The notes under the pieces were generated by a model. The model did no database searches, was not told the DNA's origin, and was given only the letters and a program-made list of their open reading frames with translations. Below are positions 5,232-50,529 of a stretch of DNA of 64,000 bases, one piece after another (within the stretch, counting starts at the first letter, position 1; the number at the start of each line of letters is the position of its first letter). The stretch covers positions 147,354-211,353 of the forward strand of contig MNCI01001967.1 in the NCBI GenBank assembly GCA_015680685.1, written 5' to 3'. The position numbers and the translations under genes were made by a program. The DNA is from Gnetum montanum. Lineage: Eukaryota; Plantae; Gnetophyta.

Positions 5232-5239
5232 CGCAACTC

Positions 5240-10336: not shown

Positions 10337-12262
10337 CACCTTGTTTGTTGGGAAAAGGTGGCATGACCTAAGTGCTCTGGGGGCTTGGGGTGATGGGGTT
10401 TTAGGACATTGTTCTCATGGGATACTAATCCCTCATCAACCACTTCCTGAGTCGGGAGACACCAAGTAATGATTCTTAGAAGAAAATATGCTCAAGTAAT
10501 GATTCTTAGAAGAAAATATGCTCAATGTGAGGCCAATATTCAAGACTCCCACTTGTGGTGAAATATTTGCAAGTTTGCCCAACAGCTATCTTAGATGGGA
10601 CTTTTGGGAGCCTGACTATGGGAAACCATGAAGCATAAATACCCTGCAGCTTGGGGTGGAATAATGTTTGGAAAGGCCCCCTACTCAAGAAACTTAAATG
10701 CTTCTTATGGCTCATCAACTTGGGGGTGCTGCTAGTACGAGCACTAATCCAGGAGCGTGGCCTCCATATAAACAACATGTGCCCCCTCTACTACAGCGAC
10801 ATTGAAATTATGCATCATTTTGTGTTTTTGTGCCCATTCTCCAAAGTGGTTTGGGCCACCTCGGGGATCACACAATAGCTGTGTGAGGACTCTCCTACTG
10901 GAGTAGTGGTATGGATGCTCTAGCGGGCAAGGAACGAACACATCTTTCAAGCTGCTCCGCTACCATTGCCTATACATATTGTTGTTTGTGCCTCTAGGCT
11001 TTGGAACAAGGCCACGACTACAATGGGGGTTACCACCAACCTTTGAGCTTGACTGTCAAATCTTCAGGGCCAACTAGTTGTTGCGGGATCAGTGGTGTGA
11101 ATCACCAACCTTTGAGCTCGACTGTCAAATCTTCAGGGCCAACTAGTTGTTGCAGGATCAGTGGTGTGAATGGGATGGGAAGACCTTCCTTTCCTTCTCA
11201 CCAATGACCTAGATCTCACAGGTGCATCCTTCTTCTCATGTTGGAGGGGGGATGCCACTACCTTCTAGAGTGTTTGCATTTGGCTTATCGAAACAACCAT
11301 TGCAGATTATCTTGGTCTTCCGGTTGCAGGGGAGATAGTGTTGCCCTCGGGGCAAGGGCTCCAAGATGCTGAAAGCTTCTTCCTTGGACTACTCCGAAAG
11401 ACTAGGAGTGCCTAGGTCCCCAATTCAGGCTTGGCCCCACTTTGGTAGGATGTTGTAGAGCTTGTGGAACATTTCTTCGTCTCGTCGGGGAACATTTGGA
11501 AGCTCTAGGGGATCCATTTTTCCTTTCATTTGCTGCATGTAGCTAGGCTGACCACCTAATCTTCCGAAGTTTTTTTGGGCCTCCCTACACTGGGGAAGAA
11601 GGGGATGCCACTTTGGCTTGATCTTGGCCTTAATGGAAAGTGGTGCGACTTGTGGAACTGTTGTTGGTAAAGCCCATTTCTGTCACCATGACATATACTA
11701 GACATAGGCCATCACAGGAGGGAGAGAGTCCTCCTTTGCATGGGCCATTCTAGAGGAAAGAGAGGTGTTGGCAGGGGTGGGGGAAGATTCGGATTGGCAG
11801 GGCTCTGCCACGAGTTAGCACCCATCATTGCAGGAGCAAATCCAAGCTACCGAAGACCATATTCGTAGGGAGTTGCATTGTAAGATTGAAGTTGACCTCC
11901 ATAGGGCCATTGCTAAGGTCAGGGTAGAGGAACAAGTGTGATGGGAAGCTGAGTTCTAGTGAAGTGAAGAAGAGGCCAAGGTCAAGTGATAGGAGGAAGA
12001 ACAATAGCTCAAAGAGTTGGTGGTGGAAGAGCAGTGCCAATGGGAGCTACAAGATGCTACGTTTAGAAGTGTCATGGAGGATTAGCTCCGAGAGCAAATT
12101 AGGGAGAAGTTGTGCTGGAAGGAGTAGGAGCAACTCGAAAGAGAAGAAGAGTAGCATGTTAGGGCCTTTTTGAAGGAGCGACAAATTAAAAGAAACCAAG
12201 AGGCTATGCATGAGCCCAGTGATGGTTTTGCATGGGAAGATGCCCATCTGTGGTTATGGGAG
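10337..12262 (+). mobile_element. L1 fragment, copy B: late ORF2, zf-RVT, extension, coiled coil, start of J-domain
   Basis: HLVCWEKVA*PKCSGGLG at the start; zf-RVT ORF 10651-10878; WML*RARNEHIF; HFFVSSGNIWKL; E/Q/R-rich run; WFCMGRCPSVVMG at about 12223-12261. Interrupts sequence that is contiguous at about 19165. Confidence 0.88.
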
Positions 12263-12685
12263 GGGGTTAGGATATTGAAGTAAAAATAAATAAACAATAT
12301 TCACTTGCATAAAAGGAAAATCTAACTATGAAAAAATGTACAAAACATTCATGTAATGAAAGACTTACTCCAAGGAGACCTCCAGCCTTCCAAGATGCAA
12401 TATTCCCATTGTATAAATGAAAGAAGTAACTAGGCATTTCAAGTGTATTTTACATGTCATATAACAACCAACTCACATCATAAAATGGAGAGAGTTACAA
12501 TAGTTAGGTTTACTTCTTATGGAAAATTCAACTAAAGTTTTTGTCTCATTTTAGGCATCTTAAGTTTGAGCAAACAAATCTTGAAAATAGGGTCTGAATT
12601 TTTGGTAAGTTTGGGACTGAAATGAATCTAAAATTATAATCATCAACACAGTTCGTGGGAGTTGGGATTTAACAATTTGTTTTTT

Positions 12686-14693: not shown

Positions 14694-17220
14694 AATTGTT
14701 GAAGTCGATTGAAAGATTCTCAACACTTTTTTGTCCAACTGAATTGCTTGTCTTTCCTAAGAAGATGTCAATGGTGCTGCCATCTTTGAGAAATTAAGAA
14801 TGAAGTGCCTATAGTTTCCTGCTAGAGCCAAGAAACTGTGTATTCCTGCACATTCTTCAGAATATTCCATTCTGTTATTGCTGTAATCTTCTTATTATCA
14901 ACTGCTATCCAACTTCCTGACACTAAATGCTCCGAAAATCACACACTTTCTTGCCAAAATGCACATTTGTTTAAGCTTGCATACAATTTATGATCTCTTA
15001 ACATTTGCAAAATAATTCTGAGATGTTGCTCATGTTCCTTATAACTCTTAGAGTAAATTAAAATGTCATCTATGAAGACTATCACAAATGAGTCTAAGTA
15101 TGGCTGAAAAATGTGGTTCATTAGACTCATAAACAAACACCCTTGGAGTATTAGAAAGACCAAAAAGCATCACCGTAAACTCAAAATGTCCATATCTAGT
15201 TCTAAATGTTGTCTTATGGATGCCTTCTTCCTTAATTTGAAGTCGGTGATACCCTGATTTGAGATCTATTTTGGAGAATACTTTGGCTTCCTTCAATTGA
15301 TCAAACAAATCATCTATCCTTGGCAAGGGATATTTGTTCTTGATGGTAACCTTATTCAACTGGCAATAATCAATACATAGCCTTAATGTGCCATCTTTCT
15401 TTTTAACAAATAAAATTGGTGCACTCCATGGAGACACTAGGCCTAATAAAACAGTTTTATAGAAGTTTTTCTAACTGTAACTCTAGTTCTACCATTTCGG
15501 TGGGAGACATCCTATAAGGTGCTAAAGATATAGGTGATGTTCCTAGTATCAAGTCTATAGTGCACTCAATTCCACAATGAGGTGGCATTGCTGGAAATTC
15601 TTTGGCAAAAATATCTTTGTACTCACATACAATAAGAACATCCTCTAAAGAATGTCGATCATCTTCCACAATTATTGTTTTGCAATAAACAATGAAGACT
15701 TGATTATTCTTTTGAAGTTCGCTTTTAATTCGCCTAGCAGCAACCAAGTTTCTTGTAGCTGTCTTAGGTTCCCCTTGAATGTTTATTTCCTGACCATTCA
15801 CCTCTAAAGTAATGGTCCTTTCCTTACAATCAATAATTGCTTTATGTGAACACAACTAGTCCATGCCCAATGCAATGTCAAAGGTTCCTAAATTTATGAC
15901 AGTAGGTTCTAACTCAAACTCTCCCCCACTTAAAAACAATGTACATCCTTGGACCTTTCTATTGACCTTGGCTTTAGACTCATTGGCTAACTCAATGCAC
16001 CCTTCTATTGGCACATAGCTTAAATTTTCATTTGACACCAATCTAGGTGAGATGAAGCAATGAGTGGCACCACAATCAAATAAAATTGATACCTCTTTAC
16101 CGTTTAGTGGACCCTTACCTTCTATGATAGAATTCTGAAATTACACAACTTGGTTTTCGAGTACTGCCCAAAGTCTTCCCATTGGTGGATGAACAGATTC
16201 TGACACATTTGGGTTTTCTTGGCTAGCATGCTTAGACTGATTTTCTGGACAAAACCTCTTCAAATGAGGTCCACCGCATGTGTACCATCTTTGACTTTGA
16301 GTTGATCACATACTAACGCCTTGATTTTTACCTTCCCCTATGGGATAATTACTAGCTTGACTTTGCATGGGGCAGTTCCAATTTCTATTATTTCCTTAGG
16401 TTTGATATTGGCTGAAAGACTAATTACTGTTTCTAAAGCTGTTATGAAAATTCTTGGATTTGCTTTGATGACTTGGCTGCCCATGGTTCTTAAAACTTGG
16501 ACCCTTGGGTGGTAAGGAGGCCATGTGATTAGCTTGAGATTTTTGCTAATTATCCTATGCAATTCTAGCCTTCTCTTCTACCTCCACAAATGTCCCAGGC
16601 TGAAACATTGAGACATTAGCATACAAAGGTGGAATCGAACTCTCCATAAATCAGTTAGCCTTGTCTCTCTCACTTAGGTTCATGTGGGAAACATACTTAA
16701 GGAGTTTCACAAACTTAGCTTCATGGGCACTAACATTGGTGTTAGGAGTTTGCATTAAACTAAAGAACTCTTTCCTCTTGTTATCCAAGTAGAAATGAGT
16801 AATGTATATCTCATTAAATATCCCCATAAATTTATCCCAAGTGAGGCTATGCACATTAACAATTTTTACCACTTCAGTTTGCCAACATAGGTTTGCCTTA
16901 CCTTGTAGCATGTAGATAGCAAGAGCCGCCCTTTTAGTTTTAGAACATCCCAAGGTATTATTAACTTTTTCTATATCACTCAACCATGCATCAACCCTAG
17001 TAGGATCTACTGCTCTTGTAAACTTGGGAGAATTAAGCTTTATGAATGTTGGAATACGGTTTTTTAGACCAGTTAATCCTTGCTCATTTTGATTGCCTAA
17101 AGGTTGGGCTTGATATTGTTGCATTCCTTGAGCCATCATTTGGATAAAAGTAGCCATCATGGTAGCATGTAGGACCCCTGATAACCACCCTCTAAACATC
17201 AATATAAATTTTTTTTCCAA
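14694..17220 (-). pseudogene. Ty3/gypsy (Tekay-like) gag-protease-RT; continuation of 7870-9138
   Basis: gag ORF 16651-17220; protease ILFDCGATHCFIS about 16050-16090; [43 protein letters not shown]. Confidence 0.95.
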
Positions 17221-18272: not shown

Positions 18273-19900
18273 TTAAAAACTAGCTTTGTTCAAGGTGATT
18301 GCTAACACTGTGTATCACTTGCTAAGCTAGAAAACATCAAACATTTGTGTAACTCACTTGTTTCAAGTTTTATTTTACAAGTAGCAGCAACGGATGTGGT
18401 TGGATGTACTCCTAGTCCTCCACTATATATCCACCATACGAGATCATTTAATCTATAATAGGCTACAAACAATGGTTGGGAATGAAAAATGTATAGGTTT
18501 CAACAACTTTGCCCTTGCAATGTGGCATTGCATTCCCACATTGAGGGCCATCCAACTTGAAGAATTTGGTCACTATTTGGCCATGAGTTGGGTTATCTTC
18601 GAGTTCTAAACTACACAAACAAGGCTTGGCTCAACCATCGTTTTTCGACTACACCTCAATATACCCTCAAGATAGGTGACAAGGGATCATACGTGAGGTG
18701 GTCACACACATATGATTGGTGCTTGCATAATTGAAAACCTTCAGGTGTTGTGCAGCTCAACCCCCTTGGGTCCAATGGCTCAGGATATTAAGTCGAAGTA
18801 AGCATGTGTACAGGTAGGATTGGATAGTGGTGCTTATCTCCACATCTAGGGTAGGATGTGTGCAAAATAAATAAACAATGCAACCCATCCATTCAAGATA
18901 CGGGGATGAATATATTATTGTTAGAATGATCAGTTAATGATCCTTAAAAATACTACATGCTTCACACAATGCACACCAATCAAATGCATCATCCACCTAA
19001 TTACAAACTGTGCCTTTAGCTGAATTGCTTATCCTAGGATCCAAAGGGCTTCTAATCATAATTCATGCGGGTTCATTTTACGTAATGCAAATAAACATTC
19101 ATAAATACACATATATTTTCTTTCTTTTCTTTGCACAAATAAAAGGATATAATTACTAATGAATAAATGGGGTTATCATATTGAAGTAAAAATAAATAAA
19201 CAATATGGACATTGCACATGCGGGTTCATTTTACGTAATGCAAATAAACATTCATAAATACACATATATTTTCTTTCTTTTCTTTGCACAAATAAAAGGA
19301 TATAATTACTAATGAATAAATGGGGTTATCATATTGAAGTAAAAATAAATAAACAATATGGACATTGCATGAAAGGAAAATCTAATTATCACTTGATAAA
19401 ATAATTTGAAATCTATGTCAGCTTTGGAAACATTAGATTGGTTTGTCTTTCACATAAGTTAAGGATTTGGACTCACTTAGCAACTTACATAGTCAGGTTG
19501 AATTACTTGGAGCTTTGCATTGAGATCCTCTATCAGCTTCAAAGGTTCTTTTCCGTTGGCATCCAATTTATGATCGTCATTGTAAACCTTTTGTTTTCTT
19601 TCTTCAACGTTAGGCATCCCAAACTTAACAAACAAAATCTGAAAGTAGGGCTTGAATTTTTGGCAAACAACTCTGATTTTAGCAGAAAATGAGGGTCTAT
19701 GGCAAAATCTGAAATTCTAGTTATCAATAGAAGTGGAATTTCACAGTGTTCTCTTTCAGCCTAAGGCAACTTCAGTCTTTGCAATTTCTCTAAGTGTGAA
19801 GGCTGAAACGTGTAGAGTTTAGGCACAACATTTTCTAACAAACTTTGCTTTTGTTTCACATGTGTACACTCCCTACCAAGACCTAATAGTTTTGAAAGAC
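18273..19900 (-). mobile_element. LTR/leader remnant of the Tekay-like element
   Basis: Colinear homology with 9550-10335 and 12262-12610; upstream of gag; no clear PBS seen. Confidence 0.65.
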
Positions 19901-19939
19901 TTCATAACTTGACAGTGATACTAAGTACTGTGTATGCTT

Positions 19940-21335
19940 GAGCTGGGGGAGGAGAACCCCTATAGACACAAGAGTAACAAAAACATAATCCGAAACCTCC
20001 CAATAGGCAAAATTTGCATTAAAGAGGGTGTTGGACCTCCTAAACAATATAGGCCCATCACTGGCCCCTTTTGAGCACTACATTCAAAACCATACACCAG
20101 AAACTGTACTTCCCTTATTGGGAACCTTGCTTGGTCATGAGAAAACAAGTCATCCAGTAGACTATTGTATCTTGGTGCAAGGGTAGATTGCCCTTGCTTG
20201 GCTATGTATTCCATCAAGGACTACCCAAAAACGTTGTATCTTGGTGCAAGGGTAGATTGCCCTTGCTTGGCTATGTATTCCATCAAGGACTACCCAAAAA
20301 CGTTTCGTAGTGATGAAAGCGATAGCCTCCTATAATTCCTTGTACTTTGCTTTGATTGTTTGTTGGGCATCTACCATGGTAGCCTTCTCCAAGTGGAATT
20401 TAGCTGAGGTCTTCTTGATGTATCATTGCATGTTAGCCCATGAGACGTTCTAGTTCATGCCCATAACCTCATAAGGGCACCGGCCCATGCAAAACCAATG
20501 TCTAGTGTTGGCCTCGTGTGTAGCCAGTTGACCCTGCTGGATCTACTCCTCCTCTAGGAGGGCCCAAATGCGCTGCTCTTCCTCCTCTTCTCAGAAGACC
20601 TATTTTTTTTCTTTCTGGTGCAAATCCTTCTTGATCTATGCTCTTAGCTCATCCTCTAGGGTGCTTCTAAACATAGCCTCCTGCAACTCTATTTGGCACC
20701 GTTCCTCCAAGGCCACTTCTCTCAGTTACTGCTTAGCTTCCTGGTATCTATGCCTAGTCTCCTCATGTATTCTCATCTCCTCCTCCCAATGTGCTAGCTT
20801 CTGGGCCCTCGCATTTGCAATGGCCAGAAGTAGATCAGCCTCAAATTGGCTTTGAAGCTCTCGATGCACCTGTTTCTTTGCAAACTAGATTTGCTCATGG
20901 AGAGGTAGTCGATGCATGGTGGAACCTTGCCAGTCAGGATCCTCCTTGCCCTCCACCTGCATCTCCCTTTCTGAATGCTCCTCCAGCACAACCTTGGTCG
21001 AGGAGGAGGATTCACCCTTGAAAGATGGTCAGTGGTGGATATACACCCTCCTAACCTGGAGGAGTTTGGCCAGTAGTGGTTGTTGTGGTTGTGCCACATT
21101 CCTGAGTGCCAAAATCAAGCAAGAATGCCACCCTCTCCTCTCTCACCAGAGTGAAGCTAGAAAATATTTCGGAAGGTTAGGCAATTGGTCAAACTACATG
21201 TGCCAAAGGAAGGCAAAGTGTGCACCCTGGAGTTTCCACATATTTCCAGATTGCACAAAGAAACATTCAATTAGCTTTGTAGCATCTTGTGAAAGGGAGG
21301 GAGGGATGACTTTGGGACCTGCCGGTTGCCGATCA
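19940..21335 (-). mobile_element. L1 3' fragment, copy C: conserved block, coiled coil, J-domain, 3' UTR
   Basis: Homologous to bases 1-70 (QDATKLIECFFVQSGNMWKL) and to 11440-12260; encodes CPYEVMGMN*NVSWANMQ*YIKKTSAKFHLEK..KYKEL*EAIAFI. Confidence 0.85.
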
Positions 21336-24300
21336 TAATTATGCTCTTGTGATGCTTTTGCTAACACTATGTATGTAGTATGGTCTCTTCTGATCATCAA
21401 GTTGTGTTAGTACTGCACCAAGGGCATAGTTGGAAGCATTAGTCATGATATGAAAAGGTCTTGATCAATCTAGAGCTTTGAATGCCTTTTCACATGACTT
21501 AATCCCCTTGAAGGGTGCATCCTTCTTTGTGACTTCTACAAGCAATTTAGCTATCTTTGAAAAGTTTTCAATAAATCTCCTATAGTATCCTATATGGCCT
21601 AAAAAGGATCTTACATCTTTCATTGTCTATGGCCATTGAGTGATGTTTTGGATGACTTTGATCTTTTCAGGACCTACCTCAATACCCTTATGGGAGATTT
21701 TGTCTCCCAACACTATGCCTTCTTGGACCATAAGATGGCTCTTTTGCCATTTGAGCTTGTTTGAAATCTAGCCCGTATGTGGAAAAATCATCCATAAAAA
21801 CTTCAACACCATTACCTATTTGCTTCTAGAAGATACTTAAGACCAGTCTCTAGAAGGTTGCTAGTGTGTTGCAAAGATCAAAAGACATCTATTTGTAAGC
21901 AAATGTTCCCCATGGATTGGTGAACAGCCTTTTCTTGGTCTCCAGGTGCAATATGGATTTGATTGTATCCATTGTACCCATCCAAAAAAACTGTAATACT
22001 CATGGCTTAAAATTGTGTCCAAGACTTGATTAACAAATGGGAAGGGCAAATGATCCTTGAATGTAGTTGAGTTCAACATTCGAAAGTTGATGCAGATGTG
22101 CCATTTGCCTCCCTTCTTTGGAACCATCACCGAAGGATTGACCCATTCACTATCTGCAATGGGATAGATGAATCTTGCCTTTATTAACTTTTCCAATTCT
22201 TGCTTGACTACCTCCTTGAGTTTAGGATTAAGCCTTTGTTGAGCTTGGCATTTTGGTTTGACTGCAAGATCAGTGTAGATCCGGTGTTGACAAATTCGTG
22301 GATCAATTCCCGTGATCTCATCAAAAGACCATGCAAACGTTGTAGGCCATCTGTTGAGCACTTCAAGTTTTTTTTCTTTTTTTTTTCTTCTTTTTTGGCT
22401 CTTTGTCTAGGTCGACGTTGATAATCACCAGCTTCGTAGTATTTAGGAATGCATACACTAATGTTGTCGATAGGGCTTTCAATTCTAGCGATTTTGGTTC
22501 CATTGTATCTAGGATCTCCAAGTATCCCCAGTTTGTGTCTTCTTCCTGATTGTTTTGAGGATAAGAGTGTCTTTTCCTTAGCTTTCCTTAGCTGTTCCAA
22601 CTTATCTATTTCTGCAAGGTAGGTAATAATAATTTGTTCCTCTGCTTCCATGTACTTGTCAAACTGAGTTTCTTCACTTGTAATCAACCACTAGGTGCCC
22701 TCTTGTTGGATGGTTGTTGCATACAGACAATTTTGCATACATCTTGTTTCAACACATCTATTGCATATTTTAGTCTCCTCTCTTTTGATAGCCCAAATTT
22801 TTTTCACGCAATTGCACCCGTTATCATTGTATGCGATACATGGAACTCTTTGTCTTTGTATGATTCCAACCTCATTTTCCTTGGAAATATTCAAGGACAA
22901 ATCACAGATTCCAAGCTTAGCATCCATGGTGCTAAGCCAAGCTCTTCCCATGATAATCGGGAATTCTCCCTTGTTTTTCCCCACGTGAATGACTAGAAAA
23001 TTAGCAGGGTAAGACCAGCCACTAATCGTAGTAATGACATCATCCACTTGTCCAAGTGGAACTATAATTGACTAGTCTGCAAGCTCTAAGTGAATGTTAC
23101 TTTTCTTTAGTGGTGGTAAGTTCCAAGTATGATACATGTCTTGAGATATCAGGTTCACTCCAAACCTAGAATCCAATAGAGCCTTGCATGGTTTTTGTCC
23201 TAATATTTGGAGATAAACCAAGTGATTTCCTAGATCAATTCTCTTTTGTGGAAGAGCCCCTACCTTTATCCAATGAGTTATGGTCTGAGTGAGCATGATA
23301 GTTGTGACATTTGAACTTGGTGAAGTCGAAAGCTTGTTGCGTTGAGAAGGACTTGATGTAGATGGGGTGGAATTAGATGTGTTCCTCATCCCATGAGTCT
23401 TTTCAGGACTCATTCTGAAGAATGGTCATTTCCTAGGTTGAAACTCATAGGTGACCATCTCCTCATGCATATTAACTGCCTTTAAAGCATTCTGCTGGGG
23501 TTGTGATGGCAATTCCCCCTGCATAATAGGAGGTGGCATTGGTGGCAAGGGATTTAGGTGTTGGGTAGAATGACCAATTGTCTGCAAATGTACATATGAG
23601 TTGGGATTAGTCCTCAGTGACATTGATCTGTGGTATTTTAGTGGATAATACTATGGAGTCTGGACAATTGTGTTTGCTGGTGAGATTGGATGTTGAACAT
23701 AGTATCCATAAGGATCAAGTCGTTGATATTGGTGGTGGCATGGTCCATGTCTACAGTTGCTACCACTACTGCTAATATTGCTCTTACGGTTGAGGGTAGG
23801 CTCCGCTCGGGTAATAGGTTGGCTGGAAATGTTGCCTAATATTACCTTGAGGATAAGGAAGTCTTCTAGGTTATTGCTTTTTGACGAAGCTTGGATTGAG
23901 TCTGTATACTCTAGATTCTTGCAAGTGGGCCATAAGAGGACAACATTTCGTAGGATGGTCATACTGGCACACCTTGCCTCCTTCCTCTGAACTAGAGTCA
24001 GTGTACCCTTCAACGCTAGCAACTTTTCTTTTTATCTTGTAATTGTCTCATCCATAATTTCTTTTCTTATTCTTTTCCTTGTCATTGTTGAGTGCTTGTT
24101 TAGTCTTTTCCTCCATAATTTTTAGGACTATAGCAAATTTTTAGGACCTTAGCTGCTATATCATTCACTGATTTTTGAGTAGGTAGAGTCTTTTGCTGAA
24201 TGACCTGATCCAAGGTTTCCCTCTTGTGTATCGTAGACTCGTGCATCTCTCTTTCGGATTGATGAATCTCTATTGTACTCTTCAATTGATTTCTTCTTTT

Positions 24301-26755
24301 GTAGCTCACCTTCCTCTCTTGCCACTTGCTCAATTAGTTTTTGAATGTGATGGGTAGTCATTTCTGATAATTTTCCTTGGGTGTAAACCCCAAAGGTCTC
24401 TCTAGTTTTGCTCTACAACTCATCTACAATATGCCTGAGTTGTTCCTTTGATGAAAATTCATGGCTTGGGCACCTATGTTATAGTGAATAGTATTTGCCC
24501 ATTACTGCATCAAGGGTCTAATGAGTCCCTTGCTTCCATCCTTGGATTTGTTTTCTTAAATTTGACACCCATGAATAGGTCTAATACTTGTTGTTAAAGA
24601 TTTCAAGCATGGTACTCCAACGTTTGAGGGATTTAGGTTCTAGTGACCTATACTAGCTTTTCGCTTCCTTCACAAGTGTTCTTAGAAACAGCTTCAACTT
24701 TTGCCAATCACTTTCTATGTTTTGGAGGGCATAGGCATCGTGGAAAGCTTGAAGGTGATGCTATGGATCATCATTGTAGCCACCTTCAAATTTTGACATA
24801 TTGTTCATGTCTAGCCATTTGATTCAGCTATCCCTCACGTGCCTAGTTGGTATGTAAACAACTTCTTGGATATTTATCATACTTTGGGTTGCTATAAGGG
24901 GTTCATCATCATGGTCAAGTTCGTATGCTCCGTTGTAGCGGTGACCCCTTCTGTGCTTATATCTTTCTTAATCCTCTCTTCACTCTCTTCGTCTCCTTCA
25001 TTCATGTTCTTCATCTTTTGTATCCGAGTGTCATGAATATTGGTCATGATGGACATGAGCCCTCCTTTCTTCCCTATCATAGTCTCGATACTTGTGTCAT
25101 CTCTTGTTAGAGTCCTCCAATGATCGTGATGAGGCCAATGAGGTAGCAGGAGAACGGTGCTGGCTTGTTCTCCTTTCATGACTCTTGTATGCTTCTCTGT
25201 AGGATTTAGCATGAACCGTTGACCATATACCTTGAGTCAATAGCCTACCCCTTAGGTGTCTCTACTAGAGTGGAATGAAGTTGGGCTTTGATAGGTTCCT
25301 CAAGTGTAATGATAGGTGTTTTTTAAGGCTCCTCATGGTTTTGGTGGAGTTGTTTTGAAATGAATGCATTAGCATCAAGCTCTTCCAAGACAACAAAAGT
25401 ATTGGTCTGCTTCCCTTTGTTGTGTACATGTTTGATTTCCATGGCAGCATCTCTCCTCATTTGCTCCTTCGTGGGTTCGTAGGGTCTTGTCATGTGCTAA
25501 GTCACATGATACCTCTCATGGATTTGGTCCAAATGCATTCCCCTTAGGCCAATTTGTAGCATGTTAAGTGTTGCATGTTCTAGGGGCTGGAGCATGTTGG
25601 CTTGCATGTCCCTCCACCTCATTTGATTGTCCTGATGAATGATGAAAGTGAAGTCTGGATAGTAAGGATCAATGTGAGCATAAGTGATTCTTGTCTGCAT
25701 TGGCATCTCCCATTAATCATTGTCACTGCTTCTTCTTGTTTCCTTGGTAGGTGATGGTTGATCTTTGTTTGAAGCCATATTATATTTTTAGACGTTATGT
25801 GTTAAGTGTGCTTTTCTTATGGTTATAAGGTTTGACTTTATGTTTCAGATACAACGAACTTTGGAAAATCAATTATTAAGCATATATTGACGTGTCCTTG
25901 GCAACAATGCCAATGATGAGCGGTGGAGTAATACAAGTGTTTACATGTAGCTTGGTCGAATTCCGTGGACAAGGCAATGTAGTTATGCTAATAATTGGTT
26001 TGAGTTCCTAACCATTGTCTTCCCACATGAGCTAGTAAAATCAATGCATATGGTTTAACTCACAATGAGGTGTATGATAACTGATGTTGCTTTGGCCATT
26101 TTACTCTTAGTAAACATCAGGTAAATAGAAGTGGTTTTTAAGTCTAAGTAAACAACAAATGAATCTAGTCTAGCCTAGGCAATGGACATCCGTTCTTGAT
26201 TCTCCGCACACATCTTGGACTTGTGTAATCGTTATTGGAATTACAAGTATTTCACTACCGGGTTATGAAACAATCACACTTAACACTCGGAATTAGTCGC
26301 ATCCATTCTGCTTAATAGTAATAGTAAAGTGCATAGAAAGTAAAAAGTAACCAAGGAAATAGTAAATGTTATACTAGGTCAAAATAGTAAACTTTATTCT
26401 AAGTAAGCAATAAAGAAATCTAAGTGATGCTACACTGATGCAAAGTAATCTCGATCTTTATTTCTGGTCTTGAAACGTGTCCAGGGTACATTCCACTCAA
26501 ATAAAGACTCCGTTCAATCACTTAACATCACACTGCAGGCATACACTCCTAAGTGAGGAGTGCTAAGTGCTAAAATTGAGAAAACTAACAGACAGAATTT
26601 CGCTAAGTTGGAATGAAAACTGTGTGTGGACTGTGCATCTAAGTGTCGTATTTATAGGTCTGCACGTGTCCACGATGTTGGGTATCCAACACTGTAGCTT
26701 GTGCCCCAATATCGTAGCTCCAATATCCTAGCCTTGCAAAAAATTCGATTTATCA
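21336..26755 (-). mobile_element. 3'-truncated Athila-type Ty3/gypsy element (5' LTR, PBS, gag, protease, RT, part of RNase H)
   Basis: LTR 25914-26755 (TGATGAG..TATCA on +); gag 23.4-25.7 kb; protease ALLDSRFGVNLIS; RT IYPIADSEWVNPSVMVPKKGG..KDHLPFPFVNQVLD. Confidence 0.9.
25895..25912 (-). promoter_or_regulatory. tRNA-Asp-type primer binding site (decayed)
   Basis: Minus strand TGGCATTGTTGCCAAGGA next to the LTR, versus Athila-type TGGCGCCGTTGCCGGGGA. Confidence 0.75.
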
Positions 26756-26936
26756 GTGCCCCTGTACATAATTTTTTAAGTTAATTTATCTTGATATTTT
26801 CTCAAAAATAAAAGAAAATAGTTGATTCATCAATTCTTAAAGTTGTATCGTCAATGTAACATTTTATTATTGCTGACTTCAATGTTCTCACTCTTCTAAA
26901 ATTCCTCGTTACATTCTTCTCAATGATCAATTTGTC

Positions 26937-27745
26937 CCACGGACATAATGCCCGGCAATGGCTGCGGTGGGTGCGCCCACGGACATAACGCCCGGCGGAC
27001 ATAACGCCCGGCGGTGGCTGCGAGAGGGGCAGTGCCCATACTTTGTTTTGGGCATTAGTTGCGAGTGCTCCTGGGCGGAGCTCAGACGCCACATCCGCCG
27101 GACCTCGGCGCGGTACCACCCTGATGCAGGGTGTTCACAGGAGGACAGGGGTCGGCGCGAGTCGCTTATGCAAGGCATCTAGCAGGCGGCTAACTTCGTG
27201 GATACGGAGGATCCTCGGAATACCCTCGATATCCTCCATGAGCTGGAGCGCCCAAACTGCGCTTGTAGGCGGCTTCCGACTCACCTGTAGGGGGTGGTCC
27301 CTGGNNNNNNNNNNNNNNNNNNNNNNNNNNNNNNNNNNNNNNNNNNNNNNNNNNNNNNNNNNNNNNNNNNNNNNNNNNNNNNNNNNNNNNNNNNNNNNNN
27401 NNNNNNNNNNNNNNNNNNNNNNNNNNNNNNNNNNNNNNNNNNNNNNNNNNNNNNNNNNNNNNNNNNNNNNNNNNNNNNNNNNNNNNNNNNNNNNNNNNNN
27501 NNNNNNNNNNNNNNNNCCCCCCCACGGCCGTTGTGTTGTTGGGGGGTCGCCCCCCAGGTGTTTAGGCTTCCCTCGGTTTTCTCGGTTCTGGCTGGCTGTG
27601 TGTCTGTCTCCTCTGCGTTTTCTGGGGCCCAGGGGCCCTCCCTGTGGGGTTTCTCCTGATGGCCCACCGCTTGTTATCGCTTGTAATCTTTGTAACATAA
27701 TTTTGCTCCTTTAATATAATCCCGACCTCTTTCTCAAAAAAAAAA
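26937..27745 (+). mobile_element. Young 5'-truncated non-LTR insertion, copy D, carrying a J-domain
   Basis: 15-bp TSD AATGATCAATTTGTC (26922-26936, 27744-27758); A10 tail 27736-27745 after TTTAATATAA; GC/CpG-rich; N-gap 27305-27516. Confidence 0.92.
27030..27290 (+). pseudogene. DnaJ/J-domain coding segment with one internal TAG
   Basis: QCPYFVLGISCECSWAELRRHIRRTSARYHPDAGCSQEDRGRRESLMQGI*QAANFVDTEDPRNTLDILHELERPNCACRRLPTHL*; HPD at 27117-27125; spacing fits the J-domain pattern Y.VLG..S..E.....A..YHPD....I..A.....R..D. Confidence 0.82.
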
Positions 27746-30700
27746 TGATCAATTTGTCAATTCTTAATGTTCCATCACCAATCTGAAATTTTTTATGGTT
27801 GTCTCTCATCTTTACACACATTATCAAATTTCATAAAGGAAATGTTACAATCTCTTTTAACACCTACTTCACTTTTTACTTGTTGATTGTTCTTATCTTT
27901 TAGTTTCCATCATTTCCCAAGCATATTTATTCTTCAATGTTTGTTTGGATAAAAGTTGCTCATATAAGATTGAAGGGCGCAACACAAAGTTGCATTCGAA
28001 AATCTCAAGCACTCCTAATGATCTGTCAGAAAAGTTCTAAATCTGTGTCTGAGGTGTTTCCTCGGTCAATGCAGGGGTCAGCTGACCCATTATCCCTGTG
28101 GAATCAAGGTATTTTGAATGCATCGCATTGCTACCGTAATGATGTGCAACTGTTGAATTTTCGGCCTCTTTCATCAGTGCATTTGCATTCTTCAAACTAT
28201 GCAGCAGGATCCCAGAATTGCTTATAACAAACAGATTCAGGTAACAACTCGAAAATGCATGTTTATATGAAATCATGATAATCTTTATTAACAACAATTT
28301 ACATGATCTTAATAACTAGAAAGGAGACGTGGCTAATCTTTCTTCACAACAATTTGAGATTATTGCTGATTACTTTTAATTCAAAATCGTTCTTCCTTTA
28401 GGATGACGGTAACTAGCAATTTTATATACTTTGTTAGTATGGCTATTACAATTGGTAGGTGCCTGCATGGCGCATGAACAGGATGAACATTGAGCCTCTG
28501 AGTGATGACTCTGTACACTTATATAATTTGTTAGCATTGTCTCTGTGGCTCTGAAGCTGGGTGCATAACTACCGGACTTTGTAACCAACCACCAGCTAAT
28601 TTGGGTGCAAGAAAGAAAAAGTCTGCACATGATAGCCTAGGTGAAATTTGCAGTAAAAATTCTTTTGAAAATAGATTAGCAAGGATAAAAGATAGTTTTG
28701 CTTGGTCCATCTTTTATAAATATGTTGAGTTTCAGTATTTTTACTACTGCTATTTTGGTATTATAAAAATTTGGTAACATAATACAGAGGCATGCTTTAC
28801 TCGGTTCATTGGTATATAGAATAAATGCAACAAGAAGAATCTAGAAAACTGTGAATACATACATAACATATTTTCCTGTGATTAAAACAAGATCACAAAG
28901 CATTTTTATTATTATTTATTTGTAACATGAAACTGTAGACTCTGAATATGCAATAAAAAACTAATGAAAATACAAGAAGCTAGTTTCCTCAATTGAATTG
29001 TTTGCATCGTTGTTTTATTGATTTCATTTCTCCCGTATAAAATGCCTTTATACATCCAAAATGAAGGGCATTTTGAGGTATACCGGAATCTTGTTTGTTT
29101 GGCAGTTATTTATTTATTTTTTTTTTCAAAAATCGTGAATGTGATATCGTATGCTGAAGTGAAATTTCTTGGATAAACCACATATTTCATTCTCATAACT
29201 ACACAAAATGTACATCATTAGATTGGAGCGTTCACAAATCTGACCACCTTTAGAAGAAGAAGAACCATCGCAGGGTAACTTAGCCCATGTGAACTGTTAT
29301 TTTATTAAAACATGTATTTATAAACTCTATTGAATCTTACATTACGACAAGGACGTGTCTGTGCTATCGCATGTTGTTTTACCTAAGGATTTTTTTCCTT
29401 TTTTCCTCTTTTTTCCCATGTTCTAACATGTGCCATGCATCCGTGCCAGGACTACTGACTTAGTTCAGTCATCTGGGCTCTCAAAATGGAAGGAAGAGAA
29501 AAGGTAGTGGCAGGATTTATTTTGTGGGCAATGCCCTTGCATTTTGCTCGTAAAAGAAATGTATTTGAAACCCAAAGATCGTGGTCTTGGTTTTGATGTA
29601 TAGCATTAGATAAATGCGATGAGTCCCAAGTAAGATGTCATCAATGAACAAGTGAAAGCGTCACAATAAATATTCATTTTACAGGTTAGCATATGACTGA
29701 CTGAGAAATCTTCAGTAACATCATTCGACTTTGACGTTCATGGATGCTGGATTCTTTTTACGTGATATGTTCCCAGTCAGTTTCTAGTGCTGATCTTTTG
29801 TAATTTTATCCTTTTGTTCAGCATGGGGTGACCGGAGAAGAATCTCAGGTTGTTGTTGTTCATTCTTTGGTTAGTTTGTTTTCTTGTTACTTCGGTATTT
29901 GCATTATTAACCAAGCAAATTGATGGCGATGCATCACGATGTTGATGTATTACACGTTAATGTTCATCCAGAGCTTTTTATTGGTATTCATTGAGCTTAG
30001 CCGTTCTTCACAACACAAAAAGCCAGATTGCGACACAGAATGGCCCTAGCGAAAGAAAAAACAAACGCTTCAAATTTCATTTTAATCTGAATAGGTGTCG
30101 CCAAACAGACCACAAAGGAATTTCTACCACAATCCTAACGGTGAACAATCCAGAAATGACAAAGATGCAAGTGTAAATATGAAAATGAGTTAAACATCAA
30201 TACTTTAAAACACAAGTAGTTACTTCAAAATAAACTCTTATGGAGTCCAATATCAAATCAAACAGAACCAATATCAGAATGTATGTAAAATATTACCATT
30301 TAGCAAATAAAGTGCAAAACCTAAGCCATAAGAAAAGCATACCAATTTGAGAGATTCTCCAATAATTAAAGGGGAAAAATAGTAGCTTAGAAACCTGAAT
30401 CTTTTTTTAATTTAGCTTACTATTGCTTACAAGAATTGAGCTTATAACTTTAAGCTTTCAAATCAAGTAATAATTTTACTTAGAAATTAAAGAGATAATG
30501 AAACATTAGCACTTTAGAATTGCTATTTTGTGCAATGTATCCTATTGACTATTTATTTAATTATTTTAGGTTCTCACAACCCCCTTCCCATCCCTTGGAT
30601 CAACAAGATTTTTTTCAAAATATATGTCATTTGTAAGACATGGTTTGATTTTACTAGGTAGCATTAGGTTATAAATTTAAAAAATAAAATTATGTAAAAG

Positions 30701-30899: not shown

Positions 30900-33800
30900 G
30901 ACTAATCGCGAACCTTTGGTAGCGTTAGGATGGAGAAAGAAAAGGAGTAAGAAAGATAGATAAAAAGGGACTATGGCATCGATGAAGTGGATGCCATCGA
31001 TGAAGTGGATGCCATCGATGAAGTGGATGTCAAAATGGAAATAAACAAAAATAAAATTAATTGCAAAATGTTAAGGGAAAGAATTTAACTAAGGCTCCAA
31101 ATAGGAATGTTAGTGGGTCCTCCCCAAAGCNAAACAAAGGGGAGAATGGGAAGAGAGAAGGGCCTTAGTTAGAGGTAACACGTTTGGTTCCATAACCAGT
31201 GCTTGTAGCCCAAGTTTATTCGTCTAAGGGATGTGCTTTGAATTCACACTTGGTTTTTTTTTTTTTGTGTGTTTTGTGTTTTTATGTGTGAGAACCACAC
31301 CATGCAAAGACTTTTTTTTTTTTTTGTCTCAGCTTCCGATAATTGGGTAACATCGGAACGGCAAGAAAACTCAAGAAGAAACATTCAAGCACCCAAGACA
31401 ATGACCAACACAAAAGCATCAAGTTCCTTTGAAGTCACACCCTTTTCAATCCATGAGTCCTTCCTTAGTTTGAGAAATCCCTAGTCACCGATTCATTAAA
31501 GTTCTTATTAGAAAGGGATTGTACATTTCCAAGCCAAGAGAGACCATAGAAACGGGTGGATGGATGGATGAAGTGGTCTCATTGCTTGCCATATCAAAAG
31601 AAACATACCTTAGTATCAACATTGTGACTTAAAGGTAAAAACCAAACATTAGCAATCAATATGAAAACAGTTCATACCATCATGAAGAACGCTTATTATG
31701 GGACAAACTTACAGGGTGGATCACACACACACACAAATTGAAAAAGTATAACGATGATGTAAAACAAAAACGAGAAAAGTTAAAGAAATTTGTAAAACAA
31801 AAACTTAAAAGAACTGAGGGCCCCATATGATCAGCATAGGTGGCCATCCCCCCCATGACTGAGTTGTAAGGGAGAGATTCGAAATAATGAGCATCTGTTT
31901 GAATTTCGTAAAAGTGCCCAACTTTTTCCAATTGATGATCGTAGATTGAGGGATGGTAGTTGGCGACGCTCATATTCCAATGTATCTATGTCTTCATTGT
32001 TGGCATGGGTTTCCTCAGTGCGTTCCATGTATATTTGTTTGCTCCTTCTAGTAGCTGTCAACCACGGGGTGTCTACTACTTCTTGTGTGGTTGTTACATA
32101 CAGGCATCTTTGGTTCAAAGTTTCTTGGGCACACCTGTTACATGGAGACATTTCCTCCATGTCATCACTTGATGAATCACTGTATGTGATGCATGGAACT
32201 TTCCTCTTCTCGATCTTTCCACATATGTTTATTTTAGAGATTTCCAAGGAAAGATCGCGGATCCTAAGGCATGCGTCTATTGTACTCAGCCATGCCCTTC
32301 CCATTATAATCGAGAAGTCCCCTTCGTTGTTGTTCACTTCAATCACCAGAAATTCAGCTGGGTAAGACCAACCACACATAGTGGTGATGATGTCCTCCAC
32401 TAATCCCAAGGGAATGGTGATGGACTAGTCTGCCAGCTCTAGTTGAATGTTGCTCTTCTTAAGTTGGGGTAGGTTCCAGGCGTGATACATCTCACGTGAT
32501 ATTAAGTTGACTCTAGAACCCGAGTTAAGAAGAGCCCTATGTGGTTTCTTTCTGGCGATCTGCAAATAGATCAAGGGACTCCCAGGGTCAGTTAGTTTCC
32601 TGGGAAGGTGGCCTACCTTGATCCAGTCGGTTACGGTATGCGTTAACATAACCGTATGCGTTACGCTCTGTTGGACTGAAGGGTTCTCCGAAGTGTTAGA
32701 TGGTGGAGGAGTGTACATGGCCTCAACCGCTTGTTGTTGCGAGAGTTTGTATAGGCTTTTGGTTCTGAAGTAAAGTCTTCTCTTTTTACAGTTTTCAGAA
32801 CTAGCAGCAGGTTGGATATTTACAGCTCTCGCAGCGTGATGTTGCTGTGGTTGAGGAGGAAGTTCCCCTTGCATTGTTGGAGCAGGAGGTGTTATGGGAA
32901 CTACTTGTGGTGGAAGAGGTGCGGATGGATTAGGAGGATGGAACGAGTGTGAGATGTCTCCCGGAGGAGAAGGAGTCCTTCTGAAGTACTCCCGAACTTG
33001 GTAGTGACGGTTGGGGGTTGCGTGACCCATAGAGTCACTTGGAGAAATCGGCTGCTGCACATAATAACCATATGGATCAGGCTACCGGTAAGGGTACTGT
33101 TGTGTTGGCGGTGGCATCCCCCATGACTGTGGGTATTGCCACTGCTGATGCTGTCCGATGGGCTGTGGTGGAGTTCCACTTGGATAATACGTTAAGGGTT
33201 GGTGGAACTGCCTTGGGTTACCTTGTGGATAAGGTAACCTTCGGGGTGTTTGCCGTTGGTTGAGTCTTGGATTAAGCGCATACACCCCAGACTCCTGTAG
33301 ATGTGAGATGATGGGGCAACATCCCTTAGGATGGTCATAATGGCAGATCTCACATCCACCGTCATCGTCTGAATCAGAATCCTCAGCCACATCGGAGTTA
33401 GTGATTTTTCCCTTACCCTTGTTATGTGCAGGGCCTAAATCTCTCCACTTTTTCTTACCTTTGTCACTACTTTGTTCTACCTTAGACTCTTCTACAATTT
33501 TCAAGACTGTTTCAATTCTTGAGTCTAAGGAATCCCACATTTGGTCTACCTTGGCCGATATCTCGGTTGTTAACTTTTGGATCGGCAAAGTTTTCCGATT
33601 CACCAACTTTTCGATTGGTGACTCATCCTCTTCATCACAAAATTTCACTCCCTTCTTTCGAAGGGAGAGATCATGGTTATACTCTTCCGCACTTTCCCTT
33701 TTGCGTAGCTCACCTTCTTCGTTTGCTACTTGCTCCAACAAGCTACGTACTTCATGGGCTCTAAGTTGTGAGAGTCTCCCTTGGGCATAAGTCCCAAGGG

Positions 33801-35986
33801 TTTTTCTAGTTTCATTCCTTAGACCATCCACAATGTGGCGAAGTTGATCCCGTTGAGCGTACCCATGGTCCGGGCAACGATGTAACAATGTGTAATAGCG
33901 GGCCATGGCAGCATCCAAGGGTTCGTGTGTACCTTGCTTCCAGCCTTGGATCTGCTTACGCAAATTGGACACTCTGGAGTACGTTTGATACTTTTCGTTG
34001 AACAGTTCTAGCATCGTACTCCACCTCCTGATGGTTTCCAGTTCTAAGGACCGGTATCAGCTCTCTGCTTCTTTGGTGAGTGTCCTTGGGAACAACTTAA
34101 GTTTTTGCCACTCATTTTCTATATTCTGCAAGGCACAAGCATCGTGGAATGCCTGTAAATGATTTTGCAGATCAGCATTGTATCCCCCTTCAAATTGTGG
34201 GATGTTGTTCTTGTCTAATCGTTTGATCCGGCTATCCCTTAAATGCCTTGTGGGAATCCTAACTGCCTTCGTAATGTCAAGCATACTTTGGGTTGCGAGT
34301 AGGGGCTCGTCATGATCGTCTCTTTCATGACACCTGTGATGTTTGCGTTGTTCCCTACTCTCCCTACGTCCTTGCCCTTGTCCTCTCTCTCGACTTTCAC
34401 GTCGAGGTCTTTCATCTTTCTTACTTTTATCCTCACCTTTATGTTCATGGTGGTTGCGCCCAAATGTGGAAGGAGAGGGTGAGTGATGTGAAGAAGGGGG
34501 AGAAGAAGGGGAACCATCGCCATGACGATGTTTCTTGCCTTCTCTTCGGCTGCTACGACCTCGATCGTTGTGACGATCAAAGTGCCCGTCCTTAGCATGA
34601 GTGGTTGTTTCCTCTGTGAACAGCTGGTGTTCACGAGCATCAGAACTAGGGATATGTATCGTTGATCGTAGGTTCTGATACTCATCCTCCTCACCATCGT
34701 TAGGAGGGGGAACATCCTTTGCTAAAGAACCCGTGATAAAGGGTTCCTCATCTCCTATTTCGCTAAGGACGTGCGGGGCTTTGCCCTTCAAAAAAACATG
34801 TTAACTCTCCTGTCTTAAGTCTCTCATACGTTGGGCATCTGTGGGATAATAATCCCTCATGTCAAAATCTTCTGCAACGTATTCCGCGAAATGCTCTTGC
34901 ATGCCAATCTGTACCAAGGCACGGAAAAGCATGCGAGAGATTGATCGATCTGGGGGTAACACAATGTTACCTTGCAAATCTCTCCACCATAGTTGTTCGT
35001 CTTGATGGAGAACAAAAGTAAAATTAGGAATATACTCATCGGGATGAGTATATGTCATCCTATATTGTTTAGGACTTGGCTGATTTTGGTTATGTTTTTT
35101 ATCTTGCCNNNNNNNNNNNNNNNNNNNNNNNNNNNNNNNNNNNNNNNNNNNNNNNNNNNNNNNNNNNNNNNNNNNNNNNNNNNNNNNNNNNNNNNNNNNN
35201 NNNNNNNNNNNNNNNNNNNNNNNNNNNNNNNNNNNNNNNNNNNNNNNNNNNNNNNNNNNNNNNNNNNNNNNNNNNNNNNNNNNNNNNNNNNNNNNNNNNN
35301 NNNNNNNNNNNNNNNNNNNNNNNNNNNNNNNNNNNNNNNNNNNNNNNNNNNNNNNNNNNNNNNNNNNNNNNNNNNNNNNNNNNNNNNNNNNNNNNNNNNN
35401 NNNNNNNNNNNNNNNNNNNNNNNNNNNNNNNNNNNNNNNNNNNNNNNNNNNNNNNNNNNNNNNNNNNNNNNNNNNNNNNNNNNNNNNNNNNNNNNNNNNN
35501 NNNNNNNNNNNNNNNNNNNNNNNNNNNNNNNNNNNNNNNNNNNNNNNNNNNNNNNNNNNGAGAGAATCTAATTGCGATGAGTAGCCGATTCCTTGGTTAG
35601 CCGTACACATTCGTTAATGCTTGTAACCAAGTCGTACTCATGCTGCGCTACTAGGAAAATAATAAATAACATGTAATAAACCTATTCCATGCACTGCAAG
35701 GTTTATCCACAAAGCTCGTCTTTATTGCCGTACACAACTTGTGTTCAAATACAAAGCTGCTCGAATAAAGATCCGTTCACTTGGGGACTCCTACTGCGGG
35801 CACATGGAAAATATTCTATCTCTGGAGTGACTAAACTGCCAGAGCTTTGCTACTTCTAGCCAAGGATGAGAAATGAGGGGAGTGCCGCCTCTTATTTATA
35901 AATTTGGCGGCGGACCGCGATATCACGTACGCGATATCGCGGGGGATGACGCGATATCACGGTGCATGCGATATTGCATCTCATCA
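30900..35986 (-). mobile_element. Athila-type element with gag-protease and no RT/integrase; 5' LTR partly in gap, 3' part lost
   Basis: LTR 35560-35986 ending CTCATCA; gag-PR homologous to 22.7-25.7 kb; downstream spacer resembles 54.5-54.7 kb (GGGTGTGAC.TCAA.GGAACTTG). Left boundary approximate. Confidence 0.85.
31831..35058 (-). pseudogene. gag-protease ORF, one frame with four internal stops
   Basis: Track ORFs ending at 34801, 34057, 33082, 32425 and 31831 share one frame; LKLFPRTLTKEA, CEICHYDHPKGCC, ALLNSGSRVNLIS, IIMGRAWL. Confidence 0.9.
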
Positions 35987-47816: not shown

Positions 47817-50049
47817 TCAGGTAGACTCACTATCCTTGTCCTGAGGCTTTTTGTCGCTCTCAGAAACAGCATCAGAAACTAGATCCATAGGACGGTGCTC
47901 AATGACTTCATCAATGAGACCAAAATCCTTGGCCTCCTGAGGTGACATGAACATATCTCTATCCATACACTTCTCGATATTATCCAATTTCTGCCCTGTG
48001 TGCTTGACATACAGCAAATTCAGCCTTTCCCTCATCTTCAAAATCTCCTGGGCATGAATGGCAATGTCAGCTGCCATGCCACTAGCTCCACCAGATGGCT
48101 GATGAATCATTATCCTCGCATTTGGCAATGCTCTGCGCTCCCCTGCAGCACCACCAGCAAGTAATAAAGAAGCCATTGATGCAGCCTGACCAATGCATAG
48201 TGTCTTCATAGGAGACCTGTTACAACACCAACTGACTAATTACAAAAAACATAGAATAATTGCAAGAACTGCTGCACCACCAAACAGTTAATTAAATGAT
48301 GAATATTGAAAAAATAGTACAAACAAGAATAACAACATGACAAATAATTATTTGGAACAACTTTACCTACAGTTTTTTGTTTATTTTATAGAGTAAATTT
48401 GAGGAAATTGCGTTAATTGTGACCCCTTGAAACACAGAACAGTAATTTTTCTATGTTTATAGAACCGAATTGCATACTCAGGATGTGTTAAGACACCTAG
48501 AAGAAACTGCACACACGTAACGTATTTATAGCTAGAATAGAACATTGCCTTAGAGCCCTGTAAAGAGATCCTTTGCAGGAGGAGCAATGAAGTTAGTGGT
48601 TACGCACATGAAAAATTTGCATTTAATTAAAGTACCAATCGGTACAGCTGTGGCAAGTAACATCACCAAAATCTTAAATGTCATTAAATGATTATCTCCA
48701 TATGCACCTTTGAAATACAAGTGAACAAACATAACAGACAAGAATAGGAAAGGCAAATAACTGATCTTCTTTTTTCAAATAAACACTACATCTGTAATTT
48801 TCTAAAGTATGCACAATCTCTTCTATAAAGAATGTAAAAGATAACAAATAAAAATAAACAAACACTCTGTAAATCCAAATCGTTGGGATTTCCTAAATCA
48901 GTTTTGATACTTTCTGAACACTTAGAGATACATGCATTACCAATCGAAGGACATAACAACATAGAAAATACTGAAACAACCCGATTTGTGTCCTAAGATT
49001 TGTTTTTGGCCGATGGTCAAATAACAAAAAATTGCTAATGTTGATTGTGCCAAGTTTTTCCAGGCATTGAAAATACACATTAAAAATTTTTGTTTTCAAT
49101 CCATAATTCATTATGCTCAAATGAGGCCAAAACGTCCCTCTTCCCTCTTGAACTGAAGCCAAGTGGCTGTAAGCGTTGTCACATCATCACACTGTTGTTT
49201 CTTCTTAATTTTCTCTTGCTGCCTGTTTTCAGTTTTCTGTTGGGATTTTTATAACACATTGCAGATGGTTTAAGTTTGTGACCTATTATAAATTCCTTAA
49301 GGGCACCTTAAACACCACCTAAAATAGCATTTCTAAGTAACGAAATTTGAAAGTTCAGTACATTACTATGCCTAGTATTCATCATGCAAGATGATTTGTT
49401 ATAAATTCAAATATCAATTGAAAAGTCCTTTGGTTTGACGTTTTATTTTGCAAATAAAAGATCCACATTAAAATTCATCCCAGAAATGCCAGTAAACTTG
49501 CCAATGTTATGGTCTAGCTCTTGCTGCTTTTGGTCAACTGCCAGTAAACTTAAACCCTAATCCTAAAGTTTATATTTTCAATTTGGGTCACAAAATACAA
49601 CTTTTGCACACTATTTGTCATAAAGCAATATCTAAAAAAAAGCATAAATTTAGAATAGAAGAGAAAAGACTGCATAAACCCTAGAAAAGAGAGACTGACC
49701 GAATGTACTGCATGGTATCATAGACAGCGAGGCCGGCGGTGACAACGCCACCAGGGGAGTTGATGTACATGTGGATGGGCTTGTGAGGGTTTTCAGATTC
49801 CAGAAACAACAACTGAGCCACAACAATGGCCGCGGTGTCGTCTGCGATGGGGCCATTGATGCAGATTATGCGTTCCTTGAGCAGACGCGAAAATATGTCG
49901 TAAGCGCGCTCCCCTCGCGAAGTGTGCTCGATCACCATTGGAATCAACCCATATCCTCTCCTCTGCAAATCTTTTACTAAGCTAAACCCCCTAAACCCTA
50001 ATATAGCTTTTTCCGCTCCTGCTTTGCCTATTTTCCACACCTTCCTCAT
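47817..50049 (-). CDS. CLPP2: ATP-dependent Clp protease proteolytic subunit, mitochondrial type; exons 50049-49700 and 48216-47817
   Basis: [39 protein letters not shown]|[30 protein letters not shown] (Ser-His-Asp triad); phase-2 GT-AG intron; basic N-terminal presequence from MRKVWK. Confidence 0.95.
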
Positions 50050-50529
50050 CTTTGTTATTCCTATCGTCGCTCGATTTTTAACGCCAAGGTTTGAAAATGC
50101 ATCGGATACAATACAATGCCGCCGCTGAACCAGTACTGTTCTTTGCCAACGACGTCGATGCCGCATCATTCAATCAATCGATCATGACTTTTGATTGTTG
50201 GGCATGGTTAGGGTTCTAGATTTGGCTTCACTTCCTTGTGTTTGAATCATATCGCATTTGAAGTTGAATATGGCAGGCAGCCATGTCGTTCTCCCAAAGA
50301 CCGACATGTTAAGTCTGGTCTATCAAAATAGATAACCATTTTCTATTAGAAAGCGATTTAAATCAAAAGATTAAGGTCTTTAGAACCTAAAATCAGGGAA
50401 TGAGGAGGCTCAAGGACAGTGCCCCAGACAGTTAAGGAGGCTCAAGGACAGTGCCCCGTACAGATGAGCGAAAAATTTGGGAGTACATGACCGTTGGTTT
50501 GGAAAAGCTTCCCAGGTTTATGTTCAATA

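Follow-up and report, generated by a model that had tools for sequence, protein, structure and literature searches.

The systems closest to the insertion at 26937-27745 of a 64-kb stretch of Gnetum montanum DNA (the window, within which all searches for nucleotide relatives were made) are truncated retrotransposons, cellular J-domains and processed pseudogenes. To the 5′-truncated copies of L1-type long interspersed nuclear elements (LINEs), which encode an apurinic/apyrimidinic-type (APE) endonuclease (EN), a reverse transcriptase (RT) and a zf-RVT domain, the insert is alike in its short A tail, its 13-15-bp target-site duplication (TSD) starting with A, its AT-rich target, the loss of its 5′ part from a random point and its dead-on-arrival state; it differs from them by a J-domain as the retained coding end and by small tandem duplications at the 5′ end. 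With the J-domains of cellular DnaJ/Hsp40 proteins (PF00226) it shares the Y.VLG of helix I, a basic helix II and an HPD motif at the expected spacing, but it scores below the Pfam threshold, reaches at most 39% identity over 31-47 residues, carries an internal stop, and has no attachment to any cellular J-protein architecture. Like processed pseudogenes of host genes, it has poly(A), a TSD and no introns; unlike them, the insert has no detectable parent gene or orthologue, and its nearest relative is transposon sequence.

Taken together, the evidence makes it very probable that this block, heavily truncated on its 5′ side, is the 3′ end of a J-domain-tailed plant LINE of the L1 type. Mechanism and form are standard for a 5′-truncated L1-type insertion, and what is unusual is the J-tail lineage: a literature search on LINE and other non-LTR (long terminal repeat) elements with a DnaJ or J-domain retrieved no paper describing such an element.

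The insertion and its target site

The features of the insertion and of its uninserted counterpart are as follows.

26922-26936, plus strand: left TSD copy (AATGATCAATTTGTC), identical at 15 of 15 positions to 27744-27758; a paralogue has a single homologous 15-mer at 6443-6457
26937-26996, plus strand: 5′ end of the insert, a duplicated pre-J segment delimited by repeat search and Tandem Repeats Finder (TRF), in which the authentic tail frame is lost
26997-27287, plus strand: remnant of a LINE C-terminal tail, GHNARRWLREGQC and then the J-domain, identified by translation, Pfam, PDB matches and tblastn to an older LINE fragment (copy B, below)
27180-27182, plus strand: premature in-frame TAG in helix III, which interrupts the J frame; homology to copy B resumes in the same frame
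27288-27290, plus strand: TAG, the probable native stop of the tail open reading frame (ORF), 35 codons past the TAG position shared with copy B
27291-27735, plus strand: 3′ untranslated region (3′UTR), including an assembly gap, assigned from the sequence, with no long frame continuing the J frame
27736-27745, plus strand: poly(A) tail, A10, directly before the right TSD copy, its final two A common to both
27744-27758, plus strand: right TSD copy (AATGATCAATTTGTC), an exact repeat match
6340-6625, plus strand: paralogous (not allelic) empty site, a copy of a repeat with ~101-bp subunits, collinear with the left flank, one 15-mer and the right flank

The two TSD copies are the only exact pair of this 15-mer in the 64 kb, where about 1e-4 exact second copies would be expected by chance, and the only other match at up to two mismatches, at 63519, is an unrelated site. 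The overlap of two A between the tail and the right repeat places the TSD at 13-15 bp and the tail at 8-10 A. Between the repeats the insert measures about 810 bp and ends in A10, and a possible polyadenylation signal, AATATA (27713-27718), lies 18 nt before the tail. The original prediction of a perfect 15-bp TSD and of poly(A) is borne out on both counts, and the block is supported as one target-primed insertion.

The insert is split by a run of N (27305-27516) whose length is merely estimated. Could the two sides of this gap have been mis-joined? A query consisting of the left flank, one 15-mer and the right flank, joined as a reconstructed empty site, was searched against the window with blastn and aligned across its junction with 6340-6625 (81% over 292 bp). 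Aligned globally with this query, the same segment is 83% identical across 286 aligned bases, ungapped at the junction, and it holds a single homologue of the 15-mer. Because this paralogue is collinear across the junction, the flanks were neighbours in the uninserted state; because it has one 15-mer, the 15-mer was single before insertion, and both GC-rich halves therefore belong to one insertion. The empty-site paralogue thus supports, indirectly, the earlier proposal that the TSD ties both sides of the gap together and answers the worry about mis-joining in the insertion's favour. The insertion, its boundaries and the join of its flanks are all shown by the sequence. An assembly artefact, in which unrelated GC-rich contig ends were scaffolded across the N run or foreign DNA was joined in, would account for a block split by a gap of estimated length with G and C runs beside it, but is extremely improbable given the exact 15-mer on both outer sides, the contiguity of the flanks in 6340-6625, and a composition and an order of ORF, UTR and poly(A) that agree across the gap. 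Folding of the DNA to the right of the gap revealed no special hairpin that might explain it (z 0.43). Since the probable native stop lies 14 nt before the gap, the gap would fall in the 3′UTR, and the frame across it would be irrelevant.

For a truncated LINE tail, the following course of events can be proposed. In the parent lineage ORF2, or an ORF following it, would have an extra C-terminal tail ending in a J-domain, and the LINE transcript would be polyadenylated after its own 3′UTR. Reverse transcription would start at a staggered nick within the AT-rich repeat with 101-bp subunits, the first nick falling on the bottom strand at 5′-..ATCATT/GAGAAG-3′ and leaving two T for pairing with the poly(A); by what is established for target-primed reverse transcription, the site only weakly resembles the T-rich target of L1-type elements. 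Synthesis or integration would then have halted about 10 codons upstream of the J-domain, yielding a product made of the last ~100 codons, the 3′UTR and a short A tail, flanked by a TSD of 13-15 bp. In the parent LINE, the J-domain may have engaged Hsp70.

The repeat that was hit is also found as a tandem array at 5200-7800, made of ~101-bp subunits (TRF 6196-6504, 78-81% matches) with matches recurring about every 375 bp; the insertion flanks (26817-26936 and 27759-27930) are a dispersed fragment of it. A different dispersed repeat lies farther out on the left side, at 26400-26546, some 400 bp before the insertion, and matches minus-strand 52012-52157 and 59437-59572 at 75-77%.

The J-domain and its LINE relatives

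From 27036 the frame reads PYFVLGIS..SWAELRRHIRRTSARYHPD, which supplies helix I (PYFVLGI), helix II (SWAELRRHIRR), the HPD codons (27117-27125) and then the helix III/IV region. The HPD lies between helix II and helix III and aligns with the same tripeptide in DNAJA1 and in the Pfam profile. With the 74-residue piece that ends at the internal TAG, Pfam DnaJ (PF00226) gives E 2e-4 and 21.8 bits, below its gathering score of 27.8, over profile positions 2-36 of 63. Of 40 weak matches in a sequence search of the PDB, 37 are to J-domains, and that to DNAJA1 pairs YHPD with KYHPD. A single-sequence AlphaFold2 model, which at a predicted local distance difference test (pLDDT) value of 55.6 is too weak for a fold search, has helices on either side of the HPD, at residues 39-49 and 61-73.

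Where did this domain come from? Had it been retrocopied recently from a host DnaJ gene, its parent or orthologues should be easy to find. When the same 74 residues were searched with phmmer against 1.84 billion representative proteins, six weak matches were returned (best E 1e-5, at most 42 bits), each either a generic J-domain or a spurious repeat, with 31-39% identity across 31-47 residues. Lacking any high-identity parent or orthologue among these representatives, a retrocopy of a host DnaJ gene was ruled out as a candidate, and the possibility of a host DnaJ parent, raised together with the original prediction, is decided in the insertion's favour: no close cellular J-protein was found. 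A related idea is that the insert is a processed retrocopy, made in trans, of the mRNA of a cellular small J-protein, perhaps from a host gene domesticated from a LINE tail. The ATG at 26958, 21 nt from the 5′ end and followed by a frame of ~110 codons, a 3′UTR, AATATA and poly(A), would suit such an origin, as would the lack of LINE sequence upstream of the J region within the insert. It is nevertheless very improbable, as no cellular protein among the 1.84e9 representatives is alike beyond the generic J-domain, the residues after the ATG derive from the frame-shifted pre-J duplications and form no distinct N-terminus, and the closest relative is a LINE tail.

That relative, and two further LINE copies that link it to the catalytic domains of an L1-type element, lie in the same window.

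19850-21332, minus strand: copy B, an old 5′-truncated J-tail LINE fragment with an accessory region, a coiled coil, the J-domain (20509-20237) and a 3′UTR; its 3′ boundary at ~19850 is approximate
10639-12262, plus strand: copy C, with zf-RVT at 10639-10875 (E 3.7e-13) and then an accessory and coiled-coil tail
1-4250, minus strand: copy A, a degraded L1-type LINE that retains a CCHC remnant of ORF1, endonuclease, RVT_1 and zf-RVT, then the tail

By tblastn the insert matches 20509-20237 of the minus strand, in copy B, over 91 codons (51 bits, E 2e-11). The pattern common to both, N.R.W...G.CPY.V.G....SWA....I..TSA..H, starts before the J-domain. Identity is 27% at the amino-acid level and 46% at the nucleotide level, and by codon position it is 0.44/0.55/0.38, conservation being highest at the second position, as divergence under protein coding would predict. 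In the same kind of search, generic J-domains do not exceed 35 bits with the insert or 22 bits with copy B, so the 51 bits between the insert and copy B make the two mutually closest relatives. Upstream of its J-domain, copy B has an E-rich coiled-coil segment and the accessory region (20510-21332), homologous to 11418-12276 plus in copy C and to 3-104 minus in copy A. In copy C no more than the first few J-domain codons (…CPSVVMG) are left before it breaks off at about 12262, with unrelated AT-rich sequence beyond. Copy A retains the CCHC ORF1 remnant at about 3640-4002, a weak match to Exo_endo_phos at 3302-2795, RVT_1 at 1816-1229 (E 1e-10) and zf-RVT at 653-450 (E 1.5e-5); of its accessory tail only the beginning (175-11) lies within the window, the rest falling beyond position 1.

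Copy B is therefore the bridge: it has the pre-J motif and J-domain in common with the insert, and the accessory and coiled-coil segments in common with the zf-RVT-bearing copies A and C. The chain from the J-domain of the insert to the J-tail of copy B, from there to the tails of copies A and C, and on to zf-RVT, RT and EN places the insert, by links at the protein level, at the 3′ end of an L1-type LINE with such a tail. The homology to the LINE J-tail is itself an observation, and the sequence comparisons support the assignment of the insert's J-domain to a LINE-borne J-tail lineage.

The bridging copy is also a fragment. The sequence upstream of it, 21400-25700, is Ty3/Gypsy pol and gag and not LINE, which makes copy B a 5′-truncated tail fragment in its own right. 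A long LINE at this position was considered and dropped: Pfam was blank on the large minus-strand ORFs at 20.8-25.2 kb, and the frames read as Ty3/Gypsy pol and gag. The junction of copy B with the Ty3/Gypsy fragment is at about 21350. On the question of whether copy B lies inside a Gypsy element, tblastx of 17.2-21.6 kb against 12.3-15.5 kb found nothing. At the extreme end of its tail ORF, copy B has a 69-bp tandem duplication (20164-20304, minus strand; 96% identical at the protein level).

The shortness of the insert and its 5′ duplications, which could be a family feature, would also fit a short non-autonomous, tail-only and SINE-like family (SINE, short interspersed nuclear element), derived from a LINE 3′ end, with a fixed 5′ end and mobilised by a J-tail LINE; a broken J frame would be harmless in such a non-coding passenger. 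This origin is quite improbable. Neither half of the insert has a second nucleotide copy in the 64 kb by blastn, Rfam over the whole window returned nothing, and the insert shows no SINE-type RNA head, tRNA-like or of another RNA family. Random 5′ truncation is, moreover, the commonest outcome for L1-type elements.

Lesions, the shared stop codon and relative age

Even as a J-tail LINE fragment, the copy is damaged. A 30-bp segment at 26937-26966 matches 26977-27022 with three transitions between them, an older duplication, and a perfect 16-bp tandem duplication lies at 26980-27014 (TRF period 16, 2.2 copies, 100% match). Both shift the frame upstream of the J-domain, and a TAA stands in the J frame at 26946-26948. 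Further on, the TAG at 27180-27182 interrupts the domain; past it, the 31 following codons align to copy B with a score of 28, against a shuffle mean of -33 (sd 11). The intact HPD motif of the original prediction holds for the three HPD codons, which are kept, but not for the domain, which is broken by this TAG, the frame-shifting duplications and the TAA; the predicted TAG itself is confirmed by translation, and further lesions have joined it. Copy B also keeps its frame to about 32 codons past the shared TAG, once its 69-bp duplication is discounted, and on this basis the TAG at 27288-27290 is probably the native stop of the tail ORF. The copy is inert, having no promoter, endonuclease or RT and a broken J frame.

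The internal TAG raises a question of its own. Copy B has a TAG (20329-20331, minus strand) at exactly the codon aligned with 27180 (…KEL*EAIAFI in copy B, …QGI*QAANFV in the insert), a coincidence with a chance of about 3% given the three stops in copy B over 90 aligned codons. The sole homologue of this codon region thus likewise carries TAG and offers, at the aligned codon, no CAG reference for the CAG>TAG change first proposed. From the two copies compared, the shared TAG could be two independent events at a mutable codon or an inherited feature, and, more speculatively, it may be a conserved regulated or read-through stop in helix III.

How old is the insertion? Its GC content is 0.63 to the left of the gap and 0.56 to the right, in flanks of 0.34-0.38, and the CpG observed/expected ratio (o/e) of its left part is 0.90, as against 0.42 for the window and about 0.45 for the flanks. 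The 33 CpG in 26932-27299 are the highest number in any 368-bp interval of the window, where the mean is 5.7 and the runner-up has 26. The CpG-rich insert in a CpG-depleted background is thus as originally described. In copy B, GC is 0.44 and CpG o/e 0.29, and between the two copies substitutions from C/G to T/A outnumber the reverse 50 to 14, consistent with copy B as a decayed, older relative. The identities of 27% and 46%, the GC contents of 0.62 and 0.44 and the CpG ratios of 0.90 and 0.29 place the insert in a different and much fresher sublineage than copy B.

The high CpG ratio in its depleted background, the pure A tail, the perfect TSD and the perfect 16-bp tandem repeat, set against the decayed copy B, all indicate that the insert is a far more recent arrival than the window's other LINE fragments, a relative age and not a calendar date. 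The perfect 15-bp TSD is weak evidence of age, as it bounds pairwise divergence only to below about 20% (95%). Of the recent insertion first proposed, the part that stands is that the copy is fresher than the other LINE fragments, by composition and A tail; a very young age is unsupported, and an active subfamily stands as a lead and not as a result.

Several observations weigh against a fresh, truncated J-tail LINE. Membership of the subfamily depends on a protein match of 27% identity to a single old copy, the window having no full-length or near-identical relative of the insert. The right side of the gap, the presumed 3′UTR, has no nucleotide similarity to any LINE in the window; in local alignment with the 3′UTR of copy B, the right half scored 17, with a shuffle mean of 18. 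There is no endonuclease, RT or zf-RVT in the copy, which starts about 10 codons before the J-domain; a 5′-truncated copy would be expected to lack them, and the insert is accordingly classed as a fragment, not an element. With three or more disabling lesions in ~110 codons, a very young age would be surprising unless the RNA from which the copy was made already had such defects, and the three transitions that separate the two 30-bp 5′ segments favour some age or a pre-existing duplication. Either the source RNA was already defective in the J region, or the copy is less than extremely young. The former would point to a J-domain that is not required in cis, or to mobilisation of the copy in trans.

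Implications and neighbouring elements

With exact boundaries and an empty-site paralogue, the insert is the cleanest J-tail LINE insertion in the window, and it reveals a GC-rich, CpG-rich branch of the J-tail lineage that is far fresher than the decayed copies nearby. The segment 26997-27304 can serve as a specific probe for full-length, possibly intact source elements. It is unlikely, on present evidence, that a GC-rich J-tail LINE sublineage is still retrotransposing in this plant or was doing so very recently; were it so, recruitment of host Hsp70 to the LINE ribonucleoprotein (RNP) by the J-domain could be tested experimentally, and intact members, if they exist, would make a chaperone role in LINE RNP assembly testable in a plant system. 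Since a copy that looks fresh has its J frame broken, it may also be asked whether mobility requires the J-domain.

Elsewhere in the window, fragments of Ty3/Gypsy-type LTR retrotransposons lie at 21400-25700, 31800-35600 and 14745-17220, all on the minus strand. Among these fragments, Retrotrans_gag is matched at 33085-34014 and 16654-17220 and RVT_1 at 15069-15437, and a string of Gypsy-type RT/RNase H motifs can be read from the frames at 22260-21450. A 162-residue ORF at 49681-50169 (minus strand) matches CLP_protease with E 1.9e-29 over profile positions 2-75 of 182 and is probably a ClpP/ClpR exon or a piece of organelle-derived DNA; it has the second-highest CpG density in the window, and the runner-up interval with 26 CpG sits on it.

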